Below, piece by piece: positions 54,755 to 59,356 of a stretch of DNA of 64,000 nucleotides. The notes beneath the pieces are model-generated. The model had not been told where the DNA came from and searched no databases. It saw nothing but the letters and a program-made list of their open reading frames with translations. The stretch lies in sequence record MH791414.1, one strand, 5' to 3'. Numbering within the stretch: the stretch's first letter is position 1; each line of letters begins with the position of its first letter. Made by a program: the position numbers and the translations under genes.

Positions 54755-55711
54755 TTATACTTCTCTAGCATTAGTCAATAGGTTTTGTGACTTTTGACGA
54801 GAGATTTGGTTTTTACGACCACGCCAATGTTTACCACAATCTGTACATTTGTACTGTTTGAATTTACTGACTTCAGTATATGCGAATCCAGCATCTTCAA
54901 ATTCATGACTACCACAGGTACATGTGAATTTATCCGAATCTGTATACAGGGAGAAATTCGGGAGACGGTCAGACCAAGGAGCCAATTTAATATAAAGCTC
55001 TTGAAGGGAAACAATATCATCAATATTGTAATCTTTCATTTCATCCCATGCTTCAAGATTCCCAGCCATACATTCCTTCCAAAGCTCGAAACCGGGGAAT
55101 TTATTATGTTTCGATTTTTTGGTTTCTGTGCATAGTTGGTCTGTCATGTATTCAAGCTTACGAGATGTAAACCCAAATGTGCGTTTTGCGATCTCCATTG
55201 TATCGATGTGTCTGATACCAGAGAATGGTTTCATACCATGGATAATCATACGAGCGCGAATTTTTGGTACGTCGAATCGACGACCATTTTGATGGATAAC
55301 AATATCGGCTTCATCAAGAAGTTCCCAAAGAACTTTAAGCATATTGGAATCATCGGTAATATCGTTTTCAGCTCTTTGATCCATGTAAATAATATCTTCG
55401 CTATCAAACCATTTTGCAGCAAAACTAAGCAAATGCCAATCTTGTTGAATTTGATTTAGACCTACGTTTTCTTTGAAAAGTCGCCATACGTTTGCGAGAA
55501 TTGGTGCAGTTTCAATATCAAGAAGTAATACACGAGGACCAGTTTTGAGGTCATCGATAATATCGTTTTCCTTCATATATCGTTCATAGTAATAATTTAC
55601 AGAAGATTTAGAGATACCTAGAGCCTTGGCAATAGACCGTGATCCCATCTTCTTATTTTCCTTCATGTCAACGATTTGACCAATCAGGCTGTTATAATTC
55701 TTAACGGACAT
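54755..55711 (-). CDS. DEDD/RNase H-like 3'-5' exonuclease with N-terminal HTH and C-terminal Zn ribbon
   Basis: LLDIET, HQNGRRFD, YNIDD; SRSIAKALGISKSSV HTH; CTCG...CTDCG. Confidence 0.8.
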   Translation of the reverse strand: MSVKNYNSLIGQIVDMKENKKMGSRSIAKALGISKSSVNYYYERYMKENDIIDDLKTGPRVLLLDIETAPILANVWRLFKENVGLNQIQQDWHLLSFAAKWFDSEDIIYMDQRAENDITDDSNMLKVLWELLDEADIVIHQNGRRFDVPKIRARMIIHGMKPFSGIRHIDTMEIAKRTFGFTSRKLEYMTDQLCTETKKSKHNKFPGFELWKECMAGNLEAWDEMKDYNIDDIVSLQELYIKLAPWSDRLPNFSLYTDSDKFTCTCGSHEFEDAGFAYTEVSKFKQYKCTDCGKHWRGRKNQISRQKSQNLLTNAREV

Positions 55712-55820: not shown

Positions 55821-57065
55821 TTACCAGCAATTCCTTTGGTTAAACTCATGGCTGACATCTTCAATAACTTCGTATTTCCAAGTACGAAGTTTGGCATGGT
55901 CATATCCACGAGGAATAGCGACCACGTGTTCAGGATTAACCTTACACAGAATAACCCGGTCATGTGGGCAATGGGAGTAATGCGGGATATAACTCTTAGC
56001 TGCCACATGGTAACCACTGGAACACTCATTATTTCGGTCTGGGTCTACTTCAAAAGGTAACATTTCTGGAACCGACCCGATTGAGTTATCTACACTATTT
56101 GTATAGATATCCAAATAATCGTTGGTAACCCGCTTGTATGCAAGGAAGTGTCCGTCTTCGGTGATCTTGATGTCGTTATGCTTCAGGAAGTCGAAAAGCT
56201 CATATACGGCTTCACGGCGAGGATTACGAACAAGGTTCTTCAGGAATTCAACCAAGGTAGAAACATCTTGACCGGCTTTCCAAGACTCTATAATTCTACG
56301 GGTCATATTGGTGTCCAGAACAACATCTTTATATGTCAGGATGTTACCCTCGATCTTGATATCCCCATTTACATAGTTTTCAATTGCTCGTTTGACGGAA
56401 ATTAAACCAACCGCTTTTTCTACATCATTTTCATAAATCAGAACATTCCGAGCTTCTTCGAATTTAGGATGGCTAGAATCTGCGGTATAAGCTTCCCCAT
56501 CAACATAGCAGTTAATGAAAGAATGTCCACAGTTCCAAGAACTCACGACTTCTTTTTTCGGTGGTTCAACTACAATTTCAATTTCGACATATTCGGTCGG
56601 AGTTTCTTTCACAAGAACAGAAGCAACCGCCTTTTCGTGTTTTTTCTGGATACCCTTATGACGTCGAACTACATCACCAACCGTGGAACGGGGAATACCG
56701 GTTTGTCGAGAAATCTCATTTTGACTAAGACCGGATTCGTGGAGACGAATGATTTTTTGATCTCGGGTTTCTTCAACCGGTTTATTTTCAGCGAAATCAA
56801 AATTTGCCGCATAAAAAATATCAATAAGTTTAGCCGGGGTTATTTCTAGAAGTTCGTCAGATTCAGATTGGAACAGCTTCATATCCGGAATATCGAAATC
56901 AAATTCCTCTTCTAGGATCATAACCAGTTCGATCACATCAAGTTCATCCAAACCAAGATCACCAAATGTGTCTGTAGGTTGAATAACATCTCGTTTTGTG
57001 AATCCAAATTCTTCAATCAATGCTTTATGAAACACTTCTGAAATATTTTCTTTCGTAATAATCAT
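55821..57065 (-). CDS. rIIB: RIIB protein with N-terminal ACP-like domain and HTH
   Basis: C-terminal core (FLKHNDI.IT.DG...YKRV...CSSGYHV...KVNPEHVV) is RIIB-like; follows rIIA; likely start ATG 57065 behind SD GAGGA. Confidence 0.88.
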   Translation of the reverse strand: MIITKENISEVFHKALIEEFGFTKRDVIQPTDTFGDLGLDELDVIELVMILEEEFDFDIPDMKLFQSESDELLEITPAKLIDIFYAANFDFAENKPVEETRDQKIIRLHESGLSQNEISRQTGIPRSTVGDVVRRHKGIQKKHEKAVASVLVKETPTEYVEIEIVVEPPKKEVVSSWNCGHSFINCYVDGEAYTADSSHPKFEEARNVLIYENDVEKAVGLISVKRAIENYVNGDIKIEGNILTYKDVVLDTNMTRRIIESWKAGQDVSTLVEFLKNLVRNPRREAVYELFDFLKHNDIKITEDGHFLAYKRVTNDYLDIYTNSVDNSIGSVPEMLPFEVDPDRNNECSSGYHVAAKSYIPHYSHCPHDRVILCKVNPEHVVAIPRGYDHAKLRTWKYEVIEDVSHEFNQRNCW

Positions 57066-57073
57066 TTTAATCC

Positions 57074-59356
57074 TCATTTGGATTGGGGGAAATCATCCCC
57101 CAACACATTTTTGTTAATTTCATCTTTCAGAACACCATCAATTGTAATATAGCTGAAATTTCTAGTTTTAGTAGTCATTAGAGTATATGCCATAATGTGG
57201 TCTTTCTTAAGTTTTTCTGTGAAATCTGTAATTTTTTGGGTTTGTTCCAACTTGACCTCAGAAACAATATTCCCATATTTTCCCATGTAGTCAGCAGGTA
57301 GGATAGTCTCACAATATCTAAACAGGCGGTCAAGGTAACCATCCCAATCTTTTTTAAGACTCAGTTTGAAATGGCTAATAATCTCTTCTGTATAATTATG
57401 TAGTGTTAAGTCATTAATGAAATAACCTACTTTATCTTTCGAGAATTGTTTTTCCAATTCACTTTGCATGATTTTGGAAATATCAGATTTATCCAATCTC
57501 TTCAGATTTTTATTCTTTTCGGCTTGTTTAGTATGTACCTTATTGAGTTTGAAAACATTCTCTTTAAGGATATCACTAACCATTGCCAAAATGTAATCTT
57601 CTACTTGAAGATTCATTTGTGTTTCGTCTGAGTCAACAACGTGTCCGTGGATCATACCCACATAATATCCAGAAAGGTCCTTGATGTCTTTTGAAACACA
57701 ATAAATCTCTTGAATTCCAGTGTTTGGGGAATGGTATTTTACGTTTGGTTTACCTGCCCTGCTTTCTACAGGGTTATTTTTTCTCCATTCCTTCCGGCGT
57801 TCAGATTGAAGTTCCTTTTCGCGAGCAATGATATCCGGTCCGTACTTTTCCCAAACCTTATTTGCATCAACAACTTCGATGTCATCTTTGTGATATCGTT
57901 TTGCGATCTCAACAAAGACGTCTTTAACGATTTTGGAAATCCTCTTATTATAATGGTTAGTATTGAAAACAATCATAGAACCATTATTAATGTAACCTTC
58001 TTCGTGAAGCTTCTTAAGCTTTTTTCTGTACCCACGTGCATCGGTATCAATTAATACCATCGCAGCATTCAAACGGAATTGGTTATATCTCGGGTCAACA
58101 AAAGAATCCATCACATAAGTATAAGCATCCGAAGAATACCGACTTGAATGATAAGCACGTTTTCGGTTGTAGATCCTACCGTTGGTTGTCCCCATTCCTG
58201 ATGTGCGATAAGTAGTGATATCTTTATTTTTTGGATCATCCTTAACAAGGGAAAGATACCTCAACCAAGGACTCGAAAGTTCAAAGGAATTATAGAACTT
58301 TTCCCAATCCTTCAACGATTTACCGTTGTGGAAAATATCATTACAGATTTTACTGAAAATAGAATTACCCTGATCAAGTTTTTTGATTGCATTAATCTTA
58401 GCTCTTGCGTCTTTTTGACCTTCAATCGCTTGATCTACCATCTTAATAACTTGGTCGTTATACGTCTGGAAATACGACTTCAAGGTTTCCATCGTATGTT
58501 TATCTAGGCTCAATTCTTCCCGGTTTGGTAGCATATTAACAGAACCCATCGGAAAATCTACAAATCGTTTCGCATGGGGCGGGAAGAATATTTCTGCCAG
58601 CGTATTTTCGAATACGTCTCGTGGGATTTCATAAGGAACACCACCCATCACCGCATACACACCAGATTTATATAGTTCTGGTGAAGAACAATCGTTATTC
58701 TCCCAATCTTTATAATTCAAAAGATCGATAGACATCCCTTTATAGTTCGGGTAATAACCGTTCTTATCAAATGTGAAGTACACATACTGACTTTCTTTGA
58801 TGAAGGTTGGAATATCATCTTCTTTAACCGGAATGACGATTTCAACGCCTGTAGGCTCGTCTGAGGGACCTTCGAACACAGGAACACAGTTTGGTTCACC
58901 GTCGTTCATATAAATGCTATAAACGGTTTTGGTGCCGTTAAAATAGGACGTTACGGTAAAGTTTGTAGTGTAGCAAAAAGGACTTTTCGAACCTAGACCA
59001 AATGCCCCGATAAAATCGTCTGATTGGTCTTTAGACGAAGCAAAATAAGTTGCGAAAAGTCGAAAAATATTTTCTTTATCAAGACCAATCCCGTAATCTC
59101 GAAGTTTCCATTGGAGATCCAGAATAGAAGGGAGAGTAACATCAAAATATTTTGGTGGACTGCCGCCTGCTAGTTCCAAGGCTTTATGACCATCGATAGC
59201 GTTACAGCTCAACTCACGAATAAAAGCACGGATCTTATACTTATACAACCCAGAAGAAAGAATTGTATAAGCTTTCTTGTTAAATTCCATCCCATAGGTA
59301 CGCCCTTCTTCCGTAGTCGAGCTATGGACCGGGGAGTGATGTTCAACCATTTTCAT
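57074..59356 (-). CDS. rIIA: RIIA protein (GHKL-type ATPase N-terminus)
   Basis: IRELSCNAIDG, RDYGIG, SK..SDDFIGAFGLGSKSPF. Confidence 0.92.
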   Translation of the reverse strand: MKMVEHHSPVHSSTTEEGRTYGMEFNKKAYTILSSGLYKYKIRAFIRELSCNAIDGHKALELAGGSPPKYFDVTLPSILDLQWKLRDYGIGLDKENIFRLFATYFASSKDQSDDFIGAFGLGSKSPFCYTTNFTVTSYFNGTKTVYSIYMNDGEPNCVPVFEGPSDEPTGVEIVIPVKEDDIPTFIKESQYVYFTFDKNGYYPNYKGMSIDLLNYKDWENNDCSSPELYKSGVYAVMGGVPYEIPRDVFENTLAEIFFPPHAKRFVDFPMGSVNMLPNREELSLDKHTMETLKSYFQTYNDQVIKMVDQAIEGQKDARAKINAIKKLDQGNSIFSKICNDIFHNGKSLKDWEKFYNSFELSSPWLRYLSLVKDDPKNKDITTYRTSGMGTTNGRIYNRKRAYHSSRYSSDAYTYVMDSFVDPRYNQFRLNAAMVLIDTDARGYRKKLKKLHEEGYINNGSMIVFNTNHYNKRISKIVKDVFVEIAKRYHKDDIEVVDANKVWEKYGPDIIAREKELQSERRKEWRKNNPVESRAGKPNVKYHSPNTGIQEIYCVSKDIKDLSGYYVGMIHGHVVDSDETQMNLQVEDYILAMVSDILKENVFKLNKVHTKQAEKNKNLKRLDKSDISKIMQSELEKQFSKDKVGYFINDLTLHNYTEEIISHFKLSLKKDWDGYLDRLFRYCETILPADYMGKYGNIVSEVKLEQTQKITDFTEKLKKDHIMAYTLMTTKTRNFSYITIDGVLKDEINKNVLGDDFPQSK

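Follow-up and report, generated by a model that had tools for sequence, protein, structure and literature searches.

A predicted acyl carrier protein-like domain without the attachment serine at the N-terminus of RIIB in Aeromonas phage Aswh_1

Why should an RIIB protein begin with a domain that resembles an acyl carrier protein (ACP) but lacks the serine at which an ACP is loaded? The question is raised by Aeromonas phage Aswh_1 (Straboviridae, Emmerichvirinae, Ishigurovirus; host A. salmonicida). The DNA examined is bases 1-64000 of MH791414.1, a GenBank record flagged UNVERIFIED, and this whole 64-kb stretch is called the window here. Few genes in genetics are as famous as rIIA and rIIB, and recent literature still calls the mechanism of the two unclear. 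RIIA has been described as having an N-terminal GHKL ATPase domain and RIIB as a helix-turn-helix (HTH) protein (PMC7824862). In Aswh_1, residues 1-92 of RIIB are, on the evidence of profile searches and a modelled structure, a genuine ACP homologue with the four-helix ACP fold. The features that matter first are these.

55821..57065, minus strand: the rIIB coding sequence, 414 amino acids (aa) plus stop, running from the ACP-like domain through the HTH and a disordered linker to the RIIB core (open reading frame list; GenBank ASwh1_139, 'rIIB protector'; PHROG 609; PF26926 Phage_T4_rIIB, precomputed in the near-identical ZPAH1 protein).
56790..57065, minus strand: the ACP-like (PP-binding fold) domain, residues 1-92, pI ~4 (PF00550, PHROG 5934, PDB matches, AlphaFold2 (AF2), Foldseek).
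56901..56945, minus strand: helix II of that domain, residues 41-55, ELDVIELVMILEEEF, the counterpart of the 'recognition helix' of ACPs, better conserved than any other part of the domain (DSSP on AF2 models; conservation in 11 RIIB-fused copies).
56943..56945, minus strand: the GAA codon for Glu41, at the position of the 4'-phosphopantetheine (Ppant) attachment serine, Ser36 of E. coli AcpP (sequence; ACP alignments; codon comparison with relatives).

The identity of the domain is indicated by several searches. The PP-binding profile PF00550 matches residues 25-68 with 32.3 bits, above its gathering score of 20.8 (E 1.2e-7), and PHROG 5934, 'acyl carrier protein', matches with an E of 3.4e-13. 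At E <= 0.01, a search of the PDB by sequence matches 98 distinct entries, and the 60 among them that were listed are all ACPs or ACP subunits of complex I. The top match is the Vibrio harveyi ACP 2l0q (E 5.5e-10). Against the sequence of E. coli AcpP, 25 of 54 residues are identical across helices I-II (46%), and the stretch from helix II to helix III, ELVM.LEEEFD..IPD, is near-identical. The net charge of the domain is -17, compared with -15 in E. coli AcpP. The NCBIfam AcpP models are matched below their equivalog cut-offs (TIGR00517, 46.6 against 70.45; NF002149, 45.9 against 106). Therefore, the domain is best described as an ACP homologue and not as an AcpP orthologue.

Structure prediction agrees. 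When AF2 was given the domain alone, with the 11 RIIB-fused copies as its input alignment, it placed helices at about residues 5-20, 41-55, 61-64 and 77-93 (predicted local distance difference test score, pLDDT, 79; predicted template modelling score, pTM, 0.71). Over the AF2 models the third helix is also assigned as 61-66/69-73 and the fourth as 77-92. In a model of the full-length protein the mean pLDDT of the domain, taken in 10-residue blocks, is mostly 83-94, with the loop block 61-70 at 68. The top 50 Foldseek matches in the PDB consist only of ACPs or ACP-containing complexes, with template modelling (TM) scores, normalised to the target, of up to 0.82. They include the ACP chains of MukBEF (9gm6), complex I, the Ycf2-FtsHi motor and mitoribosome assembly intermediates. 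Fold matches in BFVD are phage ACPs and the 'lysis inhibitor' of Aeromonas phage 65.2. Glu41 opens predicted helix II, which is the same spot that Ser36 occupies in AcpP. An earlier sequence-only reading of this DNA had proposed an N-terminal ACP-like domain. PF00550, PHROG 5934, the PDB, AF2 and Foldseek all bear this out, down to the four ACP-like helices. The N-terminal position is right as well, and the extent needs correcting: the domain ends at about residue 92 (56790), not at residue 86.

The serine site is the most unusual feature. The motif D40-E41-L42 replaces D-S-L, and the GAA codon of Glu41 is at least two substitutions away from every serine codon. With Glu41 in place of the attachment serine, canonical loading with Ppant would be impossible. 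The earlier reading had quoted this codon and peptide correctly, and its two deductions, that the domain is not loadable and that the GAA is no simple sequencing error, are consistent with the absence of the canonical serine, the distance to any serine codon and the repetition of the fusion in phage ZPAH1.

Do the domain and RIIB really belong to one protein? The parts of RIIB that follow the domain are these.

56655..56768, minus strand: the HTH, residues 100-137, within a wider basic region (residues 93-150, pI ~10) (Pfam HTH_SB, HTH_23 and related matches at 100-140; AF2 helices at 101-110, 115-122 and 126-136, pLDDT ~95).
56574..56630, minus strand: a disordered linker between HTH and core, residues 146-164 (pLDDT < 50 in the full-length AF2 model).
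55833..56543, minus strand: the RIIB core, residues 175-411 (PHROG RIIB profiles; AF2 pLDDT mostly > 90; invariant columns in 121 homologues).

The ACP-like domain is in frame with the HTH and core, and no stop codon intervenes, as the earlier reading had it. There is no Met in residues 62-254 and no GTG or TTG preceded by a Shine-Dalgarno sequence (SD) from which RIIB could alternatively start. This excludes an internal start that bypasses the domain, and so the HTH and core cannot be produced without it. A sequencing or assembly artefact is likewise excluded. ZPAH1, which is 98.6% identical in nucleotide sequence across rIIB, carries the same fusion, and so does the whole clade. The fusion thus cannot be put down to the UNVERIFIED status of the Aswh_1 record. 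The RIIB identity of the remainder is clear from PHROG 609, which matches residues 93-411 with an E of 5.1e-99. There are 766 RIIB homologues at E <= 0.001, and PF26926 is present in all 120 of the homologues among the matches listed. The literature search found no paper on a link between RIIB and ACP, in keeping with the earlier statement that no ACP-RIIB fusion had been described, although precomputed Pfam matches on the ZPAH1 RIIB already flag it.

The full-length AF2 model has a mean pLDDT of 87 and a pTM of only 0.54, with low-confidence linkers at residues 93-96 and 146-164. High local confidence combined with this pTM means that the domains are not confidently packed on one another, and the ACP-like domain is predicted to be flexibly tethered. 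In structural searches of the PDB the ACP part has matches and the HTH has weak ones, whereas the core has none, even though most of it is modelled above 90 pLDDT. The core fold appears to be unsolved, so it offers no clue to mechanism.

The history of the serine site can be followed in close relatives. In a tree of RIIB cores Aswh_1 belongs to a clade of 12 members, supported by a Shimodaira-Hasegawa-like approximate likelihood ratio test (SH-aLRT) value of 100. Every full-length member with a detectable N-terminus has the ACP-like domain. The N-terminus of P0010, of the same clade, is long and divergent and gives no significant ACP match, and the idea that this is a degenerate ACP was dropped for that reason. 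P0008 (305 aa) looked like a natural domain-less RIIB. However, its contig ends inside the domain (L085:1-162) and an internal Met was called as the start, which makes it a gene-calling artefact. The residue at the site is Glu in Aswh_1 and ZPAH1 (GAA) and in P0002, Gly in the phage 65 group (GGA), Asp in AS-szw and Ser in P0007 (AGT). Glu is also found in P0009 (GAA) and P0011, both of which are ordered HTH, ACP-like domain, core. Parsimony favours Glu as the ancestral residue, and the Ser of P0007 looks secondary because AGT is two steps from the Asp of its sister. On these comparisons the site seems to be constrained neither to Ser nor to Glu.

This variation bears on what the Glu might do. 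The earlier reading had suggested that it could mimic a phosphoserine. That is rejected here because Glu, Gly, Asp and Ser alternate within the clade, and fusions elsewhere have Ser or Glu, possibly Asn. Ser, Asp, Gly, Asn and Glu are all residues favoured at helix N-termini, where they cap the helix. Helix N-capping would thus account for this range of residues more simply than mimicry of a phosphoserine.

What is conserved instead is helix II, another point on which the earlier reading holds. Across the 11 RIIB-fused copies D43, E46, L47 and E52 are invariant and D40, L42 and M49 nearly so. In the order D40, L42, D43, E46, L47, M49 and E52, these seven positions correspond to D35, L37, D38, E41, L42, M44 and E47 of AcpP. 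No conservation across these copies is seen in helix III and the loops of the domain. Between Aswh_1 and its clade-mates the ACP-like domain is 20-31% identical, the HTH 71-84% and the core 63-75%. The domain thus changes at about three times the rate of the HTH and core, and it is the fastest-evolving folded part of RIIB.

Is the fusion peculiar to one clade? A custom profile and Pfam were scanned against 121 RIIBs, that is the 120 best homologues plus the query. Of these, 13 score with the custom profile and 7 with Pfam. The domain recurs, with Glu, Gly, Asp or Ser at the serine site, possibly also Asn. Group C comprises L113 (a 165-kb viral contig with rIIA upstream), P0285 and P0317, and is ordered HTH, basic linker, ACP (with DLGADSLD) and core. 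P0034 runs core, HTH, ACP and has Ser (TCT). P0046, present on three contigs from at least two samples, runs core, ACP-like domain, tail and has Glu (GAG). L117, an N4-like RIIB (PHROG 2886) with rIIA upstream, runs core, ACP with DSLD, basic tail. P0020, P0021 and P0025 give a weak partial ACP match with Asn at the site. Mapped on a 125-sequence tree of RIIB cores, the ACP trait needs 7 changes, of which at least 5 are forced by strongly supported branches. The tree suggests that ACP domains joined RIIB in at least five independent lineages, and the differing domain orders make independent gains the simplest reading.

Two further comparisons concern the choice of fold. Within group C the ACP domains share 52-60% identity, and with E. 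coli AcpP they share 56-60%, whereas the cores are only 39-62% identical. Since these ACPs are conserved while the cores diverge, their likeness to AcpP, including the Ser, is itself under selection. Among the 80 best viral ACP-like loci just three ACP-bearing frames reach 400 aa or more, and all three are RIIBs. Among 56 mid-sized proteins with AcpP-like domains, the recurrent partners are FabG and FabF, which are AcpP operon neighbours, and RIIB (twice).

Some leads did not add to the set. Vibrio phage EniLVp02 was considered as a further fusion, and reading its RIIB revealed no such domain. A homologue search restricted to residues 1-92 returned only ZPAH1, although this was a weak search, with few shared words and a harsh database size. 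No separate ACP gene lies within 4 kb of rIIB in 80 IMG/VR loci, except for a weak match in L023. There, an 89-aa frame near but outside rIIB (L023:6099-6365) is ACP-like with an E of 0.008, probably by chance. In L117 (1360-3879) the basic tail holds two similar segments (…KKAAKKGWDVLGIPDP… and …KKSAKKSWEILGVSEAQ…).

What, then, might the domain do? The reading preferred here is that it is probably a docking module and not a carrier, acting through helix II and tying RII to the ACP network. It could not receive Ppant. It would instead be tethered and strongly acidic, with helix II fitting into the type of basic surface to which AcpP ordinarily binds. We infer helix II to be the working surface, protein docking to be its task and the partner to be as follows. 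The likeliest candidate would be the RII machine itself, either RIIA, a GHKL-type ATPase, or the RIIB core. The domain would then be a built-in, cofactor-independent ACP subunit, comparable to AcpP in MukB or to the serine-less ACP of Plasmodium Isd11-Nfs1. This choice of partner is tentative, and its chances are put somewhat below even. Phages whose RIIB has no such domain might use host AcpP in trans, or no ACP at all. The domain is 20-31% identical where the rest of RIIB is 63-84% identical, so a partner able to co-evolve, such as a phage protein, fits better than an invariant host site. What makes the analogy with MukB attractive is the GHKL-type ATPase nature of RIIA together with the HTH of RIIB. 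On the present data a host client of AcpP would be nearly as good a candidate as a partner within RII.

What if the RII machine generally works with, or on, ACP? In this broader scenario RIIA and RIIB of the T4 type would bind host AcpP, or a membrane-bound client of AcpP, in trans. Several lineages would have fused an ACP to RIIB, and the Ishigurovirus clade would then have become cofactor-free. Such a general link is rather unlikely. If it were true, the fusions would be a Rosetta-stone clue to the 70-year-old rII question, and Rex escape and the membrane phenotypes would be tied to the lipid-synthesis/ACP network.

Several observations weigh against the docking module and its broader version. 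Fast divergence after loss of the Ser is also expected of a decaying relic. The AcpP-likeness of group C, together with its Ser, may equally mean contact with host enzymes, which would favour a decoy or hijacker. Literature searches gave no account of AcpP co-purifying with RIIA or RIIB of T4. The fusion is also rare. It occurs in one of the 80 best IMG/VR RIIB loci, and that one is phage 65. Matches of cultured N4-like RIIBs to the L117-type protein end before the ACP. This rarity makes a general link between RII and ACP an extrapolation.

An apo-locked domain could also be directed at the host, as the earlier reading had favoured, by filling the AcpP site of a host protein to which ACP can bind even when it lacks its prosthetic group. 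This is a serious idea, and its chances are put only slightly below those of a partner within RII. Candidate targets are the membrane acyltransferase PlsB, AcpS, MukB or a defence protein, which the domain would either block or bring together with RIIA/RIIB at the membrane. The conserved part of the domain is helix II, the surface that partners of AcpP read, and the Aswh_1 copy has 46% identity to E. coli AcpP and shares its stretch between helices II and III. Group C has DSLD and is so close to AcpP that it looks as if host enzymes must recognise it. Stand-alone ACPs with Ala in place of the serine, likewise non-carriers, are found on viral contigs too. RII proteins are generally known to be membrane-associated. 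Moreover, apo-ACP inhibits glycerol-3-phosphate acyltransferase more strongly than holo-ACP does (PMC3896788), and RIIB expression is toxic in E. coli (PMC10312443). However, T6 RIIB is toxic although it is counted as ACP-less (PMC10312443; the T6 sequence lies outside the set read). SpoT, which the earlier reading had listed as a possible target, is an improbable one because it does not bind apo-ACP (review PMC3896788). A host target is also hard to reconcile with the low identity (20-31%) of the domain among phages of a single host genus, or with the lack of conservation in helix III and the loops. Host AcpP-binding sites should be near-constant because AcpP is in general highly conserved (a statement not drawn from the Aeromonas protein). 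Many ACP clients, moreover, depend on the Ppant or acyl arm, and Glu is not kept as a phosphomimic. Perhaps, then, the domain has no task at all. A once-loadable, group C-like ACP might have lost its Ser and now be drifting as a tolerated N-terminal appendage. The threefold faster evolution of the domain and the freedom of the Ser site are what decay would produce, P0010 has no detectable ACP-like domain, and in T4 the N-terminal segment of rIIB is dispensable (the r1589 deletion and frameshift work). Yet all other clade members kept the domain while the core diverged to 63-75% identity, and seven positions of helix II stayed invariant or nearly so. The fold is predicted with high confidence from divergent sequences, and independent serine-less copies persist (P0046 on its three contigs from two or more samples; the P0009/P0011 pair). 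Useless coding sequence is usually deleted from phage genomes. A relic is therefore held to be improbable. Were the domain such a dispensable relic, the finding would be reduced to an annotation note on Ishigurovirus RIIB.

The remaining proposals look elsewhere than to an ACP client. One is that the domain (-17) folds onto the adjacent basic HTH (pI ~10) as a DNA mimic or autoinhibitor that a signal would release. The charges are complementary, flexible linkers flank the domain, and four architectures have an ACP-like domain and an HTH as neighbours (the Ishigurovirus clade, P0009/P0011, group C and P0034). Such a mask is nonetheless very improbable. The domains are not confidently packed on one another in the AF2 model (pTM 0.54), an HTH without an ACP is found in most RIIBs, and on sequence reading no recognisable HTH was noticed beside the ACP in P0046 and L117. 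It would also leave unexplained why an AcpP-like fold was repeatedly chosen over any other acidic segment. Could the domain be a variable cap that hides RIIB from host sensors? T6 RIIB by itself is enough to trigger a Lysobacter CARD/gasdermin system, and mutants that escape it have their changes in rIIB (PMC10312443), so that an appendage which evolves faster than any other folded part of RIIB could alter recognition. This chance is remote, since a cap explains neither the repeated ACP fold nor the invariant helix II, and no RIIB-sensing system is known in Aeromonas. That the domain still serves as a carrier, through a different residue or for a different group, is scarcely credible. DSLD is kept in some RIIB fusions and Ser is present in the clade member P0007, but the sole canonical site in Aswh_1 is Glu and the AGT Ser of P0007, two steps from its sister's Asp, looks secondary. 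No phosphopantetheinyl transferase is known to us to act at a different position.

The Aswh_1 domain can be set beside better-known systems. It is like AcpP of E. coli and V. harveyi (2l0q) in its predicted four-helix fold, its identity over helices I-II and its pI. It is unlike AcpP in having Glu for Ser36, in a loop between helices III and IV that is about 7 residues longer and in being fused to an HTH and RIIB core instead of free-standing. By sequence and predicted fold it belongs to the PP-binding superfamily, and its closest analogue in behaviour may be the serine-less structural ACP of Plasmodium. In P. falciparum, the mitochondrial ACP is Ppant-less yet an essential structural subunit that binds protein and does so independently of fatty-acid synthesis (Falekun et al. 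2021, PMC8547962). There too the Ppant serine has been lost from an ACP fold. However, the Plasmodium protein is free-standing and organellar, with Isd11-Nfs1 as its partner, whereas the Aswh_1 domain is fused to RIIB. The residue that replaces its serine is not Glu, and is said to be Phe. MukBEF (9gm6) offers a second analogy, in which AcpP is an accessory subunit of a DNA-handling ATPase machine and the RIIA ATPase with the RIIB HTH might be comparable. The difference is that MukB uses free host AcpP and RIIB carries its own fused domain. No complex of RII with AcpP has been reported. Stand-alone phage ACPs (PHROG 5934 / 4154; Vi01-like) are the best viral profile and fold matches of the domain. 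They have ~80-110 aa, mostly keep the Ser (some have Ala) and do not adjoin rII genes; in PhiSH19 the ACP gene lies ~76 kb from rIIB.

The rest of Aswh_1 RIIB is like that of T4 and T6. It has an HTH and a core, the latter 34-46% identical to the cores of diverse T4-like RIIBs, and the locus has rIIA then rIIB beside topoisomerase II genes, as in T4/T6. The ACP-like domain sets it apart from the other RIIB loci and cultured-phage RIIBs examined, a set that does not include the T4 and T6 sequences. RIIB of T4/T6 is a partner of RIIA, counters RexAB and triggers the CARD/gasdermin system. Protection against Rex-type exclusion and the r plaque phenotype are known only for T-even coliphages.

Why would the fusion matter beyond one clade? 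An accessory domain of the same fold that was gained at least five times is a rare sequence-level hint to the contacts of the RII machine. The feature is a rare accessory one, and its repeated independent origin makes it a concrete, testable lead on a classical problem. As for ACP, the Aswh_1 domain would be a phage addition to the small set of cofactor-free ACP folds that survive as protein-binding modules. A literature search on AcpP in anti-phage defence gave nothing relevant.

The setting of the gene in Aswh_1 is conventional, with two features upstream of the reading frame.

57071..57075, minus strand: the SD GAGGA, 5 nt 5' of the rIIB ATG and overlapping the rIIA stop (57076-57074) (direct sequence reading).
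57074..59356, minus strand: rIIA, 760 aa, the partner gene directly upstream of rIIB (open reading frame list; GenBank ASwh1_140; rIIA-rIIB order repeated in related loci).

The rIIB ATG (57065) lies 8 nt past the rIIA stop, and the two genes are probably translationally coupled. A second in-frame ATG (57075-57077) is found within the ATGA at the rIIA stop and would lengthen RIIB by 4 residues (MRIK). The SD is better placed for the annotated start at 57065 than for the ATG at 57077. The order rIIA then rIIB is also found in L086, L087, L113, L117 and L168. A search of Pfam with the 760-aa RIIA yielded zero matches at E <= 1. Directly downstream of rIIB is a 318-aa 'hypothetical' gene (54755-55711, minus strand) whose position is conserved in related phages. 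Its counterparts at L085:1187-2143, L086:7236-8192 and L087:7302-8258 have a Pfam RNase_H_2 (PF13482) match. No further ACP-like gene was found inside the window.

Serine-less ACP-like proteins are also found away from RIIB. Among the best domain matches of the Aswh_1 query, 185 in number, the site is Glu in 22 and Asp in 11, and the share of Glu is biased because the query profile itself favours Glu. Some viral stand-alone ACPs of ~80 aa have Ala at the site (EDLKGDALDAIELVMRLEEEFN) and still pass Pfam PP-binding. They comprise L106:2971-3207 and 17 IMG/VR loci (L100, L107, L109, L111, L112, L119, L122, L126, L127, L131-L135, L139, L160 and L161). The one in L106 lies between MazG-like and dNMP-kinase-like genes, with no fatty-acid enzymes nearby. 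A different set comes from bacterial and metagenomic sequences. These ACP-like proteins are 110-140 aa long, with an N-terminal signal peptide or lipobox, GADELD or GADDLD at the site and a lengthened loop before helix IV. Examples are P0182, P0153, P0194, P0151, P0147, P0192, P0171, P0174, P0230, P0154, P0159, P0133 and P0260, among others. Judging from these motifs, they look like exported pseudo-ACPs without cofactor. Together, the viral and the exported bacterial proteins look like an under-described class of 'pseudo-ACPs'.

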